Source: Piromyces finnis finn
Taxonomy: Eukaryota; Fungi; Neocallimastigomycota
Reading direction: 5' to 3'
NCBI GenBank assembly: GCA_002104945.1
Contig: MCFH01000034.1
Coordinates: 62,001 to 126,000 of the forward strand
Length of the DNA stretch: 64,000 bases
The first letter of the stretch is position 1, and every line of letters starts with the position of its first letter. The notes under the pieces are model-generated. The model saw only the letters and a list, made by a program, of their open reading frames with translations. It did no database searches and was not told where the DNA came from. The position numbers were made by a program, and so were the translations under genes. This document shows, piece by piece, positions 1-22,160 of the stretch.

Positions 1-1395
1 TAAAGAAATATAAAACCAATTATATTTCTTATTTATCATTTTAATAATAATTTTATTATTCTAAAGTATAATGTGATTCAATCTTTTTCAAAAACATAGT
101 AAATAGTAATATATTTATGACTTTTTTGACTTTTCAATTTTCTTGAATTTTTTTTTTTTTTATAAAAATTGTTATCAATTTTATTCAATATAGCTGATAT
201 GCCATAAATTTTCGTTTATAGCTTATTCTATTTTTTCCTATCAACCCGATTATTTTACTTCTTATAAAGAGTATTTTGATATGCCTATAACTATAAGAAG
301 TAAACTTTATTAAGAAGATAATAATGGGTATATTTTTCTCATAAAAATCTTTTGAGCCACATATATTTTTGAGAAAACTATTATTAGATACCTTTATTAC
401 TATTTATTAACTTTGGAATTCCATTTAATAAGTTGACTTGTCCTTTTTATTGAATAAGAATAGAAGACAGATAGGTCATATTATTAGTTGTGTAAAAGAT
501 TAATAAAATTGTGTAATTCAATCAAACGAGTAAGCTGTATTTATATCATATCATTTTCTTTCAATAAATAAATTAATAATATTTAAAGATATATTACTAT
601 ATATAATTAAAATACATTGTTATACTAACAATTAGATAATGCTCATACATAGAAATGATAAATAAATATTTAAATATATTAAATTATGAAAATAAGTTTT
701 TTCAATATATATGATAAAAAAAAATTGTTTTTTTACTTATAAATGAAATATTATTTTCTAAATAATTAAATGAATAAGGTACTAAAATAGTAGATGTAGA
801 TATTTAATGCATATTATTAAAAAACAAATAACAAAATAAATTTTGAAGCAAATTAAATATATAAAAAATTTAAAAAAATTTTAAATTTTAAAAAAAAAAG
901 AAATTATTTACAATAACATCTAACATCTTTACTACTGTTTGAATATTTAAAACTTTCTATTCTTTAATTGTATAATTAAAAATTCTATAGCTTCCTTTTT
1001 TAACTTTTAATTATAAATTAAATTATATTGTAATTTCTTAGAGTAGAAATAATATGAATTATATGAGTTATTTAATTTTAATTTTATATTATACATTAAT
1101 TCTACATTTTATATACATTATATTAAAGAATTATTACATTTATTTTTATATTTTATTTTAATTACTTATTTTATTTTATTTTTTATTATTATTATATAGT
1201 ATCACAAAAATATAATATTTTAATAATAAAATTTTAATCAATCTAATTTCAATTCTTTTTTTTTTTTTTTATTTTTAACTTATACACATCTCTATACATA
1301 CATACATACATATATACATATACACCCAATAACACACATAAAATATATTAATCAATATTTTAAATATTTCAATTATTATTTAATTTATTTTTAAA

Positions 1396-4300
1396 ATGGA
1401 TGCTTCAGAAATTGATGATGAAATTAAAAAATTACAAAAAGAAAGAAAAACAGCGAAAGCATCATTAGTTGGTTCTGTTAGTTATGATACAGATTTATAT
1501 GAATCAGAAGATAAATATGCAGGTTATGTTACAGAATTAAAAGATGAAGATGAAGAAGAATCAGAAATAGCAAGACCAAAATTAAGGTCATTTACAGCAC
1601 CAACAGAGATATTAAAAGAAATTCAAGATAGAGATGATGATGTAGATCCAATGGCAGACATGCGTCCTTCAAGAAAGATTGCTGATAGAGAAGATGAATA
1701 TCATGCTAGAAGATTCAATAGAATTATATCCCCAGAACGTGTTGATGCATTTTCAGAAAATAATAATACAGATAATGCTCGTAGTTATTCAGATGTTATG
1801 AAAGAAGCAGAACTTGAAAGGGAGCAACAAAGAATTATGAAATCAATTGCAGAAAAAAAAAAGAAGGCAGAGACATCAGGGACGACTATAAGTGCAGAAA
1901 TTCCACAACCAGAAGTAGTAAAAAAACCAGCAAAGAAGAGAAGATGGGATATGACAAGTACAGATGAATCAATAAAAACTGAAAAAAAATCAGAGTGGGA
2001 TGAAGAAGTTCGTCCTTCATCAAAACCAAAAAGTCGTTGGGATGAAACTCCGAAACCAGAAGAAACCCCCAGAAAGAGAAGTCGTTGGGATGATACTGGA
2101 AGTACACCGGTATCCACTTCAAGTGCATGGGATGCTACTCCAAAGATATCATCTGCAATTGCCGAAACTCCAAAACGTAGAAGTCGTTGGGATGAAACCC
2201 CTGTTAATGTTAGTGGTTCACAATTTGCAGCAACTCCTGTTGGCAACATGGGTTTAGTTACTCCAACACCAAATCAATTAGCTCAACCAATGACTCCAAT
2301 GACTCCGGAAGCTATGAATGCTATGAGATGGGAAAAAGAAATTGACTATAGGAATCGTCCACTTTCAGATGAAGAATTAGATAGTATGCTTCCTACTACT
2401 GGTTATAAAATTTTAGAACCTCCAGCGAATTATGCTCCAATTCGTACTCCTGCTAGAAAACTAACTGCTACCCCAACTCCAATGGGTGCTGGTGGTTTTA
2501 TGATGATGGAAGAAAATAGTCAAATGTATGATATTCCACCGGAAATTCCAGGTGTTGGAAACCTTTCTTTCTTTAAACCAGAAGATATGCAACATTTTGG
2601 AAAATTATTAGATGTTAAAGATGATAATTCTTTATCAGTTGATGAATTAAAGGAAAGAAAGATCATGAGATTATTACTTAAAATTAAAAACGGTACACCA
2701 CCAATGAGAAAGGCTGCACTCCGTCAAATTACAGACAAGGCTAGAGATTTTGGTGCTGGTCCACTTTTCAACCTTATTTTACCATTATTAATGTCACCAA
2801 CTTTGGAAGATCAAGAACGTCACTTATTAGTCAAGGTTATTGATAGAATTCTTTATAAATTGGATGATTTAGTAAGACCATATGTTCATAAAATTCTTGT
2901 CGTTATTGAACCATTACTTATTGATGAAGATTATTATGCTCGTGTAGAAGGTCGTGAAATTATTAGTAATTTAAGTAAGGCAGCAGGTCTTGCTACTATG
3001 ATTTCTACAATGCGTCCAGATATTGATCATGTAGATGAATATGTACGTAATACAACTGCTCGTGCTTTTTCTGTTGTAGCTTCTGCTTTAGGTATTCCAG
3101 TATTATTGCCATTTTTAAAGGCTGTATGTCGTAGTAAGAAATCATGGCAAGCTTGTCATACTGGTATTAAGATTGTTCAACAAATTGCTATTCTTATGGG
3201 TTGTGCAGTCTTACCACACTTAAAGAATCTGGTTGATGCTATTGCTCATGGTTTAGAAGATGAACAACAAAAAGTTAGAACCATTACCGCATTAGCTTTA
3301 GCTGCTTTAGCAGAAGCTGCTGCTCCATATGGTATTGAATCATTTGATGGCATTTTAAAGCCTCTTTGGAAGGGTATTGAAAAGCATCGTGGAAAAGGTT
3401 TGGCTGCATTTTTAAAGGCATGTGGTTTTATTATTCCACTTATGGATGCTGAAGCTGCTAACTATTATACAAATCATTTAATGGATACATTAATTAGAGA
3501 ATTCCAATCCCCAGATGAAGAAATGAAAAAAATTGTTCTTAAAGTAGTTAAACAATGTGCAGCTACTGATGGTGTTACACCAGAATATATTAAAACTAGA
3601 ATTTTACCAGATTTCTTCAAACATTTCTGGGTACGTCGTATGGCATTAGATAGACGTAATTATAAACAATTAGTAGAAACTACTGTTGAATTAGCTAATA
3701 AGGTTGGTGTTTCTGAAATCTTATTAAGAATTGTTGAAGATTTAAAGGATGAATCTGAACCATATCGTAAGATGGTAATGGAAACTATTGATAAAATTGT
3801 AAGTATGCTTGGTTCATCTGATATTGATGATCGTTTAGAAGAAGTTTTAATTGATGGTATTTTGTATGCATTCCAAGAACAAACTATTGAAGACATTGTT
3901 ATGTTGAATGGTTTTGGTACTGTAGTTAATTCATTAGGTTTAAGAGTACAACCATATTTACCTCAAATTTGTTCAACTATTCTCTGGCGTTTAAATAATA
4001 AATCAGCAAAAGTTAGACAACAAGCTGCTGATTTAATATCGAGAATAGCAATTGTAATGAAGACATGTGGTGAAGAAAAGTTAATGGGTCATCTTGGTGT
4101 TGTTCTTTATGAATATTTAGGTGAAGAATATCCAGAAGTATTGGGTTCAATTTTAGGTGCATTAAAGGCTATTGTTAATGTTGTAGGTATGAGCAGTATG
4201 ACACCACCAATTAAGGATTTATTACCAAGATTAACACCAATTTTAAAGAATAGACATGAAAAAGTACAAGAAAATTGTATTGATTTGGTAGGTCGTATTG

Positions 4301-5323
4301 CAGATCGTGGTGCTGAGTATGTTAGTCCACGTGAATGGATGCGTATTTGTTTTGAATTGATTGATCTTCTAAAAACACATAAGAAGGGTATTAGAAGAGC
4401 TGCAGTAAATACATTTGGTTATATTGCTAAAGCCATTGGTCCACAAGATGTATTGGCTACATTATTAAACAATTTAAAGGTTCAAGAACGTCAAAATCGT
4501 GTTTGTACTACAGTTGCTATTGCTATTGTTGCTGAAACTTGTTCACCATTTACTGTTCTTCCTGCTTTAATGAATGAATATCGTGTTCCAGAGTTAAATG
4601 TTCAAAATGGTGTATTGAAATCGTTAAGTTTCTTATTTGAATATATTGGTGAAATGGGAAAAGATTATATTTATGCTATTACTCCATTGTTAGAGGATGC
4701 TTTAATGGATCGTGATCTTGTACATAGACAAACTGCTTGTTCCACAGTTAAGCGTAAGAATTTAATTATAATTAATATAAAACTAATTATTTATAAATAA
4801 TGAAAATATATAATGAAATTATATAATAATATTTAATATCAATATATAATTAATTAAATAGATGCTGCCCTTGGTGTATATGGTTTAGGATGTGAAGATG
4901 CATTAATCCACTTATTAAATTATATTTGGCCAAATATCTTTGAAGTAAATAAAATAGAATAGTTTTTATAATTATTATTTATCAATCTTCAATTTATTAA
5001 CTGTAATACTCATGGCTATAATTTTTGTCTATTTTTACTTAATTTATAAAAATAAATGGAATATATTTTAGCAATCTCCACATGTAATTAATGCTGTAAT
5101 GGAAGCTATAGAAGGTTTAAGAATCGGTTTAGGTCCAGCAAAAATTTTACAATATGTTCTTCAAGGTTTATTCCATCCTGCTCGTAAAGTCAGAGAAATT
5201 TATTGGAAAATATTTAATAATTTGTATATTGGTTCCCAAGATAATCTTATACCATATTATCCAAGAATAGAAGATGATGAACGTAACCATTACCATAGAT
5301 ATGATTTAGATTTGGTAATATAG
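1396..5323 (+). CDS. SF3B1: U2/U12 snRNP splicing factor 3B subunit 1 (SF3b155/Hsh155); exons 1396-4753, 4862-4944, 5072-5323
   Basis: N-terminal RWD(E)TP repeats are followed by HEAT repeats with hallmark SF3B1 sequence ([44 protein letters not shown]). Two GT-AG introns (4754-4861, 4945-5071) join the ORFs in frame as [46 protein letters not shown]. Confidence 0.98.
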
Positions 5324-6042: not shown

Positions 6043-13277
<7,235 letters not shown>

Positions 13278-16806: not shown

Positions 16807-18913
16807 TTATAAGCCACCTTGGTCAATAAAAGTATTCATATCAATTCTTGATAAAGTTAAATAGATATAATAACCCTTTAAACTATCATTAGTAAGCTCA
16901 GAGGTTCTAACAATACTTAAACAATTTGGTATACTTGGCTTCGATTCCTTATAAATCCAAACTACATCACTTTCTTTTTCATCAACATCAGAGGTAAAAC
17001 GAATATTTGAACGATCAACATCAAGATCATCAACTAATAAATCAGATTGTTTTCCAAATAAAATTGCTGGAACACTAATTAATGGTAATTCAGTAGTTTC
17101 TTTACTATTAATCCATTGTAATAAGTTTTGAAGTTGAATTGAAAGATTAACAATACTGGTATGAATTTTCTTAGAGAGATAATAAAGTTGTGATAATAAT
17201 GTAATATATGTTAATGGTGTTACAGCATAAACATTCATATTACCAAATACATTATCAATATTCTCAACATATTCTCTTAAATTACTACATTTAAAAACTC
17301 TATTAGAAAAAGCTAATCTCCTTGGAAGAACAGATATTTTCTTTAATAAGTATTTTAATTGTTATTTATTAATATAGATGCATTTATATAATTTATATAT
17401 ATATATGAATATACTTTTTATGAAAAATAAAAACTTACCTTCCAGATATGAGCAATGAGTACATCTTTAGCTGATATCCAATCAATATTTGTTGAATCAA
17501 CTGGACTAATATTATCGGATGTTGGGGATTGAATTGGTGTTTGTTTTTCATTAGCAAATTTAGCATCAGCAATAACTTGATTTCTTAATTCTTCTAATTG
17601 CTTATCTGAAATAAAGAAATGCTTTGTTTGGAATCCACCACCAGTAATCCATTCATAGAACATCTCAAATGCTAATTTAAACCATTTAATAGATTTAATT
17701 TTATTGAAAGCTAATGGTTGATATGTAGATGGTAAATTATCATCATGTGAAACGTTAACTGATTGAGAAATCCAATCATAGTTAAAAACGGTCTTCTTTT
17801 GAATTTCTTCACCACGGTAAAGGACAGACCAATCTTCAATAAACTTAGCTATAGAGGTAATATCAGCAATAATGGAAGGATAACGAACACCAATACAAGT
17901 TTTGTTATCATTGAAATGAGTAATTCTTATTTGAAGAATTGGTAAACTCAAACTAACATATTGCTTCATAGTATAGTTTTGACCATATAAATTTGAATAA
18001 TCTGGTGATAAAATATTTTCTTTTGTATCTGGTAAAATATCAATCATATTACCATCATATTTAACAATTGAGAAAAATACCCCCTTGTTATTTAAATATA
18101 TTTCATATAAACCAGTCTATCAGGCATTATAATAAATATATAAGTTTTAAAGGTATAAAAAATATTGGTAATGAAATTAGAGAAACTTTTATAATATATA
18201 TGCATATATATATATAATACCTTTTTATTATTTGTTAATCTTCCAGATAAAATGTTGTAAGTATTTAATAAGATTTCTAAAGTTTTTCTTAATTTAGCAT
18301 TATCTAAATCACCATTAATGAAAAAGAGGTTTGAGCTGAAATCTTTAGTTTGAGAAATCTATTTTATTATCGGTTATCATTATTAATTTTGGATTTTAAA
18401 AAATATTATTATTGAATATTGTTAATAAAATAATTAAAAATATTTATAATTATTATCATTTTTAAATGTTTTGTTCAAATAACCAACTATATAAATATTT
18501 TGATTTTTATATTTCATATTTCATATTATAATTATTAAAATAAAATAAAATATAAATTTTATTACTTGATTAATAGCTGGTAAAGTAATGGTTTTAAATT
18601 CAGTAGCTTCTTCAATTTCCTCTGTACTTCCATTTGCAACAATAATTTCACTGTCTTCTAAGGAAACATTAATAACTCTAGTTAAAGATGCTGTAGTTTC
18701 AATGTCATTAATTATCTTTTCTGAATCGCTAGCTTTATTCTTTTTTAAATGAATAGCTTTAGCAGCTTTTTTTGACATTTGAACAGTACTTTTCTTTGTT
18801 TTACTCCACATTTTTTCAGCATTATAATCATTTCTTGATGCGATAGCTACACCAGCAACAACACTGGTTCCAACTGCAGTTATTATACAAATTTGTTTGA
18901 AACCGAAACCCAT
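16807..18913 (-). CDS. BAHD/CoA-dependent acyltransferase (Transferase-family) homologue with N-terminal hydrophobic anchor; 4 exons joining track ORFs 18521-18913, 17418-18047 and 16807-17238
   Basis: In-frame GT-AG junctions (18565/18359, 17438/17341) give LRKTLEILLNTYNILSGRL, YEIYLNNKGVFF, LQIRITHFND..CIGVRYPSIIAD..SIAKFIEDWS, KDVLIAHIWK and NLREYV..NVFGN. These segments occur in the order expected for the BAHD fold. Confidence 0.72.
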
Positions 18914-20570: not shown

Positions 20571-22160
20571 TTAGTGACGTAAAATAACACGCTTAATAAT
20601 ATCTCTAACAGTTGGACCTTGTAAACTAGCCTTTAAGGTATTACCGAAAGTTTGGCGAATAGTTTCTGGGGCTTGGTTGTAAGTTCTACGGACCATTGGA
20701 CCGGTAATCTTCTTAATAGTGTATCTTGGAGAAACGTGAAGAGAATCACGAGTAACCTTGTTTGGAACATCCTTGTTTGGATGGAACTTTAAGGCATGAG
20801 CCTTCTTGTTAGCAACAGTTTCTCTTAAGTATTCAACTGGGGAAGCAATTAAAATAGCAGTTAAAGAACCAGTAGTACCAGCAATGGCTGGAATGTACCA
20901 TGGAACAATTGGGTTTTCTGGATGATCTTTTTCCCACTTTTTCTTTAAAGCCTTAAGGTAAACTTCATCCATAGTATAATACCACATAAGGGTTGGAGCA
21001 GCAATGTTGTAATTAGTGATGTAACCCTTGTATAAACTACCAATACCATTAGCTTTAGCCATTTGGAATAAAGCCTTACCGATACATGGAGTCTTAACCT
21101 TAACACCGTTCTTAGCAGCAATAGCTAATTGTTCAGCTCTCCAATTGTAAGCCTTAGTTAATGGATAAATAACACCAGTTTGAGTGGCAACAGCACAAGC
21201 AGCAGCAAGTAAAGATTGACAAACTGGATGTAAATCTGGTAAATAAGTCTTAGTACCAGCCTTATATAAACCATAACTAGCAACAAGAATACCAGAACCG
21301 TTAACCTTGTATTTAATTAAGTAAGACCAGTCCTTAACAAATTGCTTGTAATTAAAGACAGTTTTTAAAGCACCATTAGCACCTGGAACTTTAAGGAAAT
21401 GCTTTTGTGGTAAACCTTCGAATGGGTAGAATCCAATTTCTATTATTACAAAAAAAATAATTATTATTAATCTTTATACAATATTTTTATTCAAAATGCT
21501 AAGTAAAAATTATTGTTATCTATTTATATATTCTTAATAAATTATTTAATAACTTATTGTCATCTATTTTTAAATGTTTTATATTTTTATAATATTTTAG
21601 TACTAAAATATATATATTTATTAAACTATTTTTTTATTATCTATATTATATAATTTTGTCTTTTCCTTTAGATTTTTATTTACATTTTTTTTTAATTTAA
21701 TTATTGCGTTATGTCTATAATAAATTAAATAAGCATATAATATAGCCTAATATATTAAAATAATTAATTCTCAATTATTTATTATTATGAATAATTTATG
21801 TATATATTGATTCTTTTTAAATATATCCTTAATAAATATCATCCTTTTATTAAATCTTATTTATAAATATTAAAATAACAATGAATTTTCCGGAAAAAAA
21901 TATATATATATTTTTACTCAGAATAAAATTTTATGATTATTATGTGGGGAATAAATTTTAATAACATATAAATGTAAATAATGTTTTAATTTATTCTTAC
22001 CAGCAAAGAAAGCACCACCAGCACCAACAACATAACTAGTTAACCAACTCTTTGGAGTAACTTGACCGTTAAATAAACTTGGACCCTTCTTTTGTTCAGC
22101 ATTAAGGTCATTACTGAATTTGGCCATAGCGGCCATAGTAAGAGCTCTTGGCATAGCCAT
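20571..22160 (-). CDS. Divergent mitochondrial carrier family (SLC25-like) protein, 342 aa; exons 22001-22160 and 20571-21439
   Basis: A 561-nt GT-AG intron gives a 1029-nt ORF. Three odd helices end in Pro motifs (GFYPFEGL, VIYPLTKA, IASPVEYLR). A GIGSLYKGY motif and QSLLAAACA / AIAGTTGSL helix starts are present. Confidence 0.78.

Follow-up and report, generated by a model that had tools for sequence, protein, structure and literature searches.

Background

Carriers of the SLC25 family alternate access by means of two salt-bridge gates set in a closed six-helix barrel. One relative, MTCH2, has been studied by cryo-electron microscopy and, according to a 2026 preprint, consists of five transmembrane segments (TMs), TM6 and the salt bridges having been lost and the prolines of TM1, TM3 and TM5 kept (PMC12934571). 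It is reported to have become an outer-membrane insertase through the loss of the carrier's sixth helix, and its conserved C-terminus lies beneath a lipid-exposed hydrophilic groove, where it has a stabilising role (PMC12934571). The authors found the MTCH family (SLC25A50; outer-membrane insertase/scramblase) only in Holozoa; SLC25A46, a further relative, is incapable of inserting proteins and, by prediction, retains six TMs (PMC12934571). The present work concerns a gene of the gut fungus Piromyces finnis which lies on the minus strand at positions 20571-22160 of a 64,000-nucleotide stretch of genomic DNA (contig MCFH01000034.1, positions 62,001 to 126,000; hereafter the window). Very probably, this gene specifies a conserved, transcribed and highly derived SLC25 member, which possesses helices 1-5, lacks the matrix gates and carries a conserved basic amphipathic tail in place of helix 6.

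The span is that of the GenBank gene of ORX46600.1 in assembly GCA_002104945.1 (1590 nt). Its product (P0017 in our searches) contains 342 amino acid (AA) residues and is labelled 'hypothetical protein BCR36DRAFT_585070' in GenBank and 'Mitochondrial carrier' in UniRef. The gene as such is therefore already on record; what appears to be new is a gate-less five-helix SLC25 derivative in fungi. A literature search revealed no paper on SLC25 proteins in the Neocallimastigomycota or on a gate-less five-helix architecture in fungi.

Gate motifs and carrier fold

The original prediction for this locus was of an atypical member of the carrier family that lacks a matrix gate, and the three motifs that it read as the counterparts of Px[DE]xx[KR], namely PFEGLP, PLTKAY and PVEYLR, are exactly as it gave them. 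Only PVEYLR fits the consensus by itself. Because motif 1 is without the basic residue, and motif 2 without either the acidic or the basic one, the Glu and Arg of motif 3 are left unpaired. All three inter-repeat matrix salt-bridge pairs are thus broken, and this holds for 11/11 aligned members of the family. The prolines of helices 1, 3 and 5 are retained, and these three helices have Kyte-Doolittle values of 1.1-1.5. The cytoplasmic network, [FY][DE]xx[KR] in helices 2, 4 and 6, is also largely lacking: helix 2 reads YGLYK, nothing in helix 4 fits, and there is no helix 6. Relatives, unlike the window protein, retain YE..[KR] in helix 2, and in those from outside the gut fungi the network persists as a remnant.

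The family possesses a series of signatures along helices 1-5. Helix 1 contains an invariant Gly and 'AE', five residues ahead of the motif-1 proline, and this proline belongs to a PxE which is followed by an invariant His eight residues past it. Helix 2 starts with an invariant Asp and has [KR]xPxTGLLxASY at its centre. In helix 3 there is a Gln/Glu-Thr/Ser pair together with the motif-2 proline, the latter without charged partners. An LYKG sequence then precedes a conserved proline in helix 4, and helix 5 contains an invariant P[VLI]E[YMF][LV]R.

Membership of the carrier superfamily was investigated by profile and by structure, the two exons being searched separately and P0017 being used as the full-length form. 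The hidden Markov model of Pfam Mito_carr (PF00153), the check which had been proposed for the prediction, gave a weak match of 27.1 bits (cut-off 22.3), in repeat 2 only (exon-2 residues 71-166, corresponding to protein residues 125-220). The related protein P0024, from the paralogue set described below, scored 52 bits in three stretches with the same model. Aligned by hhalign with six canonical carriers, the family gave a probability of 98.2 and an E-value of 5e-14 over residues 90-268 (helices 2-5) only. A PDB profile search with four close orthologues gave no match. With the wider family profile the ADP/ATP carrier (AAC) was found at 1.2e-11, along with UCP2, UCP1 and Ggc1; these are canonical carriers only, and they were always matched via repeat 2 and helix 5.

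AlphaFold2 (AF2) with a 15-row alignment produced a model with pLDDT values (predicted local distance difference test) of 70-90 at residues 30-270; a model built with only the four close orthologues had a pLDDT of 32 and was discarded. The top Foldseek matches were UCP1 and AAC (probability 1.0). VIA-align returned a carrier-like subunit of the Tetrahymena respiratory supercomplex with Z 10.7 and UCP1 with Z 8.5, and an Atlas structure search returned SLC25A39 at TM 0.51-0.54. The top structural matches are all carriers, at modest scores (TM 0.33-0.51, Z 8.5-10.7). As to whether five or six transmembrane helices are present, the hhalign alignment, hydropathy and the AF2 model support helices 1-5, and by hydropathy helix 6 is absent. 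The protein is carrier-derived, yet far from any canonical member.

The C-terminal tail

Where the matrix helix h56 and helix 6 of a carrier would stand, the window protein has a hydrophilic tail. No hydrophobic segment follows motif 3: the maximum 19-residue Kyte-Doolittle value of the tail is 0.41, as compared with 1.6-1.7 for helix 6 of the canonical carriers recovered in the same search. The prediction had called its sixth helix region (KITGPMVRRTYNQAPETIRQTF, residues 297-318) hydrophilic, and hydropathy analysis bears this out. From motif 3 onward (residues 254-342) the 89 residues include 18 Lys and Arg as against 6 Asp and Glu, that is a net charge of +12, and across the members the net charge of the tail ranges from +12 to +22. 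Its peak hydropathy is 0.2-0.6 in 7/9 members analysed.

In every member examined, the tail has the highest helical hydrophobic moments of the protein (0.7-0.9). In five gut-fungal orthologues, 80% of the positions in its distal 61 residues are invariant, compared with 50-64% for helices 1-3. This conservation and amphipathicity argue for a constrained, functional element rather than debris. As to its origin, the tail may represent a helix 6 that has degenerated and become polar; alternatively, helix 6 may have been deleted and the matrix helix h56 extended. The latter is favoured by a MAFFT alignment with canonical carriers, in which the protein ends where helix 6 would begin. Internal repeat-to-repeat comparison with hhalign gave no significant match.

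Distribution of the family

A word search gave only four close relatives. It was followed by an exhaustive profile search of 1.84 billion protein representatives, in which only 16 matches were found at E<=1e-3; a word search with an 8-row alignment added no further members. The whole unusual architecture is shared by 5/16 of the matches: P0024 (317 AA, E-value 1.6e-38), P0026 (from a GC-rich contig), P0027 (from a metagenome), P0028 (KAI9014124.1 of Hyaloraphidium curvatum) and P0036 (KAI9340045.1 of Zopfochytrium polystomum). By sequence, the family is small and occurs in zoosporic fungi, namely the Neocallimastigomycota, Monoblepharidomycota and Chytridiomycota.

Both H. curvatum and Z. polystomum are aerobic fungi with ordinary mitochondria. 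Since they contain proteins of the same architecture, the family predates the hydrogenosome and its role is not tied to anaerobiosis; the proposal that the product is a hydrogenosomal novelty must be given up in that form. In Piromyces itself the gene probably adds an apparently well-expressed membrane protein to the sparse hydrogenosome inventory of the anaerobic fungi.

A second clade of the five-helix family is made up of P0024, P0044 (25 member sequences) and P0045, which are 317-320 AA long and about 29% identical to the window protein. Their genes are very AT-rich (G+C at third codon positions 0.13-0.22), and P0024 retains the YE..K motif in helix 2. P0024 shares a sequencing run with P0003, an orthologue of the window protein, and for this reason two paralogues are probably present in the gut fungi, the window gene being the one with codon bias.

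Eight canonical carriers were among the other matches, and 6/8 read as SLC25A39/40/Mtm1 type: P0029, P0031, P0034 and P0035 are clear cases, while P0030 and P0032 resemble Mtm1 and contain long inserts. The score of P0035 to the SLC25A39 and SLC25A40 Atlas clusters is 0.95. The matches to these carriers have E-values of 4e-6 to 4e-4 over about 90 residues; a confident grouping with a characterised canonical carrier, which was to have told against the prediction, was not obtained. A bacterial protein, P0037/P0042 of a Dokdonella sp. metagenome-assembled genome (712-739 AA), matched weakly (E-value 8e-4) in five short stretches at query residues 41-85; this is probably a low-complexity or repeat match.

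Gene structure, codon usage and expression

The gene consists of two exons (Table 1), with its ATG at 22160 and its TAA at 20573-20571. The translation of exon 2 is identical to P0017 at 288/288 positions (100%). The four orthologues, which are 343-346 AA long and 78-91% identical to the window protein, read GAFFAE[IV]GFYPFEGLP across the exon junction, where the split codon G+AA specifies Glu. The exon joint and the junction Glu are confirmed, since the orthologue proteins are contiguous at this point and exon 2 matches P0017 throughout.

Table 1. Coordinates of the gene, its exons and the protein features discussed, in window positions
Feature	Position	Strand	Description
Exon 1	22001..22160	-	160 nt; 53 codons and first base of codon 54; N-terminal extension and most of helix 1; donor G|GTAAGA
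Intron	21440..22000	-	561 nt, phase 1, GTAAGA...AATAG, ~11-17% G+C
Exon 2	20571..21439	-	Last two bases of codon 54 through residue 342, then TAA stop
Motif 1, PFEGLP, residues 59-64	21408..21425	-	Pro and Glu retained; Pro in place of basic residue
Helix 2, residues 84-119	21243..21350	-	Amphipathic; invariant Asp and GLLVASY[EG] core, aligning to canonical helix 2
Motif 2, PLTKAY, residues 146-151	21147..21164	-	Pro retained; without acidic or basic gate residue
Helix 4, residues 193-225	20925..21023	-	Preceded by LYKG motif; inside the Pfam-recognised part
Motif 3, PVEYLR, residues 254-259	20823..20840	-	Canonical form; invariant across family
C-terminal tail, residues 260-342	20574..20822	-	Hydrophilic; in place of matrix helix h56 and helix 6
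Predicted 'sixth helix region', KITGPMVRRTYNQAPETIRQTF, residues 297-318	20646..20711	-	Hydropathy analysis

Codon usage was contrasted with that of nine neighbouring coding open reading frames (ORFs). In the window gene AAG makes up 27/34 Lys codons (79%) vs 145/484 (30%) in the neighbours (p=1.4e-8), TAC 13/20 (65%) vs 51/280 (18%; p=1.5e-5) and AAC 9/17 (53%) vs 116/596 (19%; p=0.003), and 23/24 Gly codons are GGT. The bias that had been predicted for these four codons is therefore real; it does not extend to TTC, for which the difference from the neighbours is not significant, or to CGT, with only 4/11 Arg codons.

Expression, which had also been predicted, is indicated by this bias and by contiguous, spliced orthologue ORFs in dozens of metatranscriptome assemblies. 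The Neocallimastix orthologue (P0010) measures 1.68 kb in three genomes and is present as a contiguous 1032-nt ORF on contigs of <2 kb in 39 JGI data blocks. Orthologue P0003 was found as a contiguous ORF on transcript-size contigs in four runs. For the window gene itself, two runs from the source organism contain 0.61 of the words of the locus, of which the exons make up 0.65. Transcription and splicing thus follow the gene model, and the mRNA occurs in gut samples at a level sufficient for assembly. We infer the abundance of the product from two things only, the codon bias and the breadth of mRNA assembly.

Two of the neighbouring ORFs served as codon-bias contrasts. One, at 1384-4797 on the plus strand, specifies SF3B1 (SF3b1 and HEAT repeats) with 39% AAG; the other, at 7248-10967 on the minus strand, a Mot1/BTAF1-type SNF2 ATPase (DUF3535 and SNF2) with 15% AAG. 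Both are housekeeping genes with low codon bias.

The G+C content of the window is ~10-17% between genes and 30-40% in exons. A region at 6046-7230 (minus strand) is almost all A+T, with two overlapping frames at 0% G+C and long runs of TAT/Tyr-like codons, and probably represents a simple AT repeat and not a coding region. Downstream of the carrier gene, the closest ORF that could be recognised lies at 17421-18116 (minus strand) and matches the Pfam 'Transferase family' (PF02458, BAHD-type acyltransferase; E-value 1.9e-8).

Possible modes of action

Strict solute exchange is very unlikely because there is no matrix gate, the cytoplasmic network is a remnant and a hydrophobic sixth helix is missing; the protein is probably not an alternating-access exchanger. 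As the best overall explanation we tentatively put forward, at rather less than an even chance, a non-exchanging five-helix carrier derivative which possibly acts through a groove. The likeliest single mechanism, though by itself rather unlikely, would be an MTCH2-like groove mechanism (insertase or scramblase-like) that evolved independently, a suggestion made by analogy. With only five helices, a hydrophilic cavity would be exposed laterally to the lipid. This cavity would be lined by the invariant Glu of helix 1, the Gln/Glu of helix 3 and the Asp and Lys/Arg of helix 2, and the conserved tail would be positioned beside or under the gap. Such a groove could lower the energy barrier for polar groups, whether protein segments or lipid head groups, that cross the membrane of the organelle, which would be the hydrogenosome in Piromyces and the mitochondrion in aerobic chytrids. 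The likeness to MTCH2 would then be convergent, not inherited. It may even be, although this is doubtful, that the zoosporic fungi turned an SLC25A39/40-type carrier into an MTCH2-like insertase/scramblase of the mitochondrial or hydrogenosomal outer membrane, and that the gut fungi duplicated it, one copy becoming highly expressed. If true, no protein of this kind would have been known outside Holozoa before, and the MTCH2-like mechanism would have originated a second time, by convergence.

Several observations weigh against a groove protein. The AF2 model is unreliable in the tail (pLDDT <50 at residues 276-342), and the global TM-scores to solved carriers given by Foldseek are low (0.33-0.42). 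In P0027 and P0036 the Arg-rich tail segments are moderately hydrophobic (1.0-1.2) and could still enter the membrane. No MTCH-like, Ugo1-like or SLC25A46-like protein was found in the 16 matches among the 1.84 billion representatives, so that the parallel with MTCH is architectural only. Fungi, moreover, are stated to use Mim1/Mim2 for outer-membrane insertion (PMC12934571), and a second insertase may be unnecessary; a literature search for Mim1 in chytrids or Neocallimastigomycota revealed nothing relevant.

An inner-membrane uniporter or channel-like facilitator, perhaps with an inherited thiol or metal-related substrate and with the basic tail as an enlarged, h56-like helix on the matrix face, is unlikely as well. 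It would agree with the nearest canonical relatives being of the SLC25A39/40 type, including the common HP[DE]...[WY]IP..[AS]G linker before helix 5, and with the conserved polar residues of helices 1-3, where carriers bind substrates. Five helices in the canonical orientation would also put the basic tail on the matrix side, as the positive-inside bias would lead one to expect, and the gut fungi have TIM22 and TIM9/10 (PMC5168858). Against this, there is no hydrophobic sixth helix to close the barrel, the matrix salt bridge is present in 0/11 members, and the loop between helices 1 and 2 lacks the Cys-rich character of SLC25A39/40. The groove mechanism is favoured over such an ungated inner-membrane path because the aerobic chytrids retain the protein, and a permanently ungated path in their energised inner membrane would be expected to do them harm.

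A non-transporting structural or tethering subunit seems less probable again. Here the five helices would be an anchor and the tail would bind a partner, for example acidic lipids, a second complex or elements of the cytoskeleton by which the organelle is positioned in the zoospore. There are parallels in Ugo1/SLC25A46 and in the carrier-like subunits built into Tetrahymena complex IV, and the best structural match is indeed a carrier-like subunit of the Tetrahymena respiratory supercomplex (8bqs_DS, Z 10.7), although the gap to UCP1 is small (10.7 vs 8.5) and within the range common for helical bundles. The tail, as the most amphipathic region and the most conserved after helix 5, would suit such a role, as would the confinement of the family to zoosporic fungi; a plain anchor, however, would have no need of the invariant charged residues within the membrane (Glu in helix 1, Gln/Glu in helix 3), and no partner is known. 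Some SLC25 members are peroxisomal, and a peroxisomal or other non-mitochondrial carrier relative is a highly improbable alternative: gut fungi express peroxisomal import components (PMC5168858), but no particular resemblance to peroxisomal carriers was noted, the best canonical matches being of the SLC25A39/40 type. That the gates and helix 6 are lost might suggest a decaying, functionless carrier gene, the chance of which we consider negligible, as the frame is intact, the intron is spliced and the architecture is common to different fungal phyla. A pseudogene is effectively ruled out by the 78-91% identity across gut-fungal genera, the 80% invariant distal tail, the codon bias and the widely assembled mRNA.

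Comparison with known systems

The closest canonical carriers are SLC25A39, SLC25A40 and yeast Mtm1 (glutathione carrier type), as judged by profile search, by the Atlas structure match and by the HP[DE]...[WY]IP linker. The similarity reaches E-values of only 1e-6 to 1e-4 over ~90 residues, and the window protein has no Cys in the helix 1-2 loop, no gates and no helix 6. The hydrogenosomal AAC of Neocallimastix belongs to the same superfamily and probably resides in the same organelle in the gut fungi (PMC5168858). It is a canonical six-helix gated exchanger, however, which the family profile matches only via repeat 2.

Two groups of carrier relatives that do not transport offer a different likeness. 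Ugo1/SLC25A46, the outer-membrane fusion and lipid-transfer factors, are gate-degenerate SLC25 relatives; the long N-terminal domain of Ugo1 is absent from the window protein. The carrier-like subunits of Tetrahymena complex IV (8bqs_DS, 7w5z_M) exemplify the carrier fold as a structural subunit, with 232 residues aligned in the case of 8bqs_DS (Z 10.7). Their lead over UCP1 is marginal, at 10% sequence identity, and they come from an unrelated lineage and context. If the protein turned out instead to be an unusual transporter of the inner membrane, it would stretch what is accepted as the minimum for carrier function.

The original prediction had likened the protein to gate-less SLC25 members, and the comparison is an apt one, above all for MTCH2, which is reported to have five TMs with TM6 and the salt bridges lost (PMC12934571). 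Both proteins share an SLC25 origin, five TMs without the sixth, the retained prolines, the lost salt bridges and a conserved C-terminal segment at the place of TM6. They differ in that no specific sequence kinship was detected (searches of the PDB by sequence profile and by structure returned no MTCH2 chain), in that the host is a fungus and in that the fungal tail is much more basic, MTCH2 having been compared by its description only. Being apparently separate in origin, the fungal family would provide a natural replicate with which to ask whether the loss of helix 6, the loss of the gates and the retention of a structured tail form a general route from transporter to groove protein.

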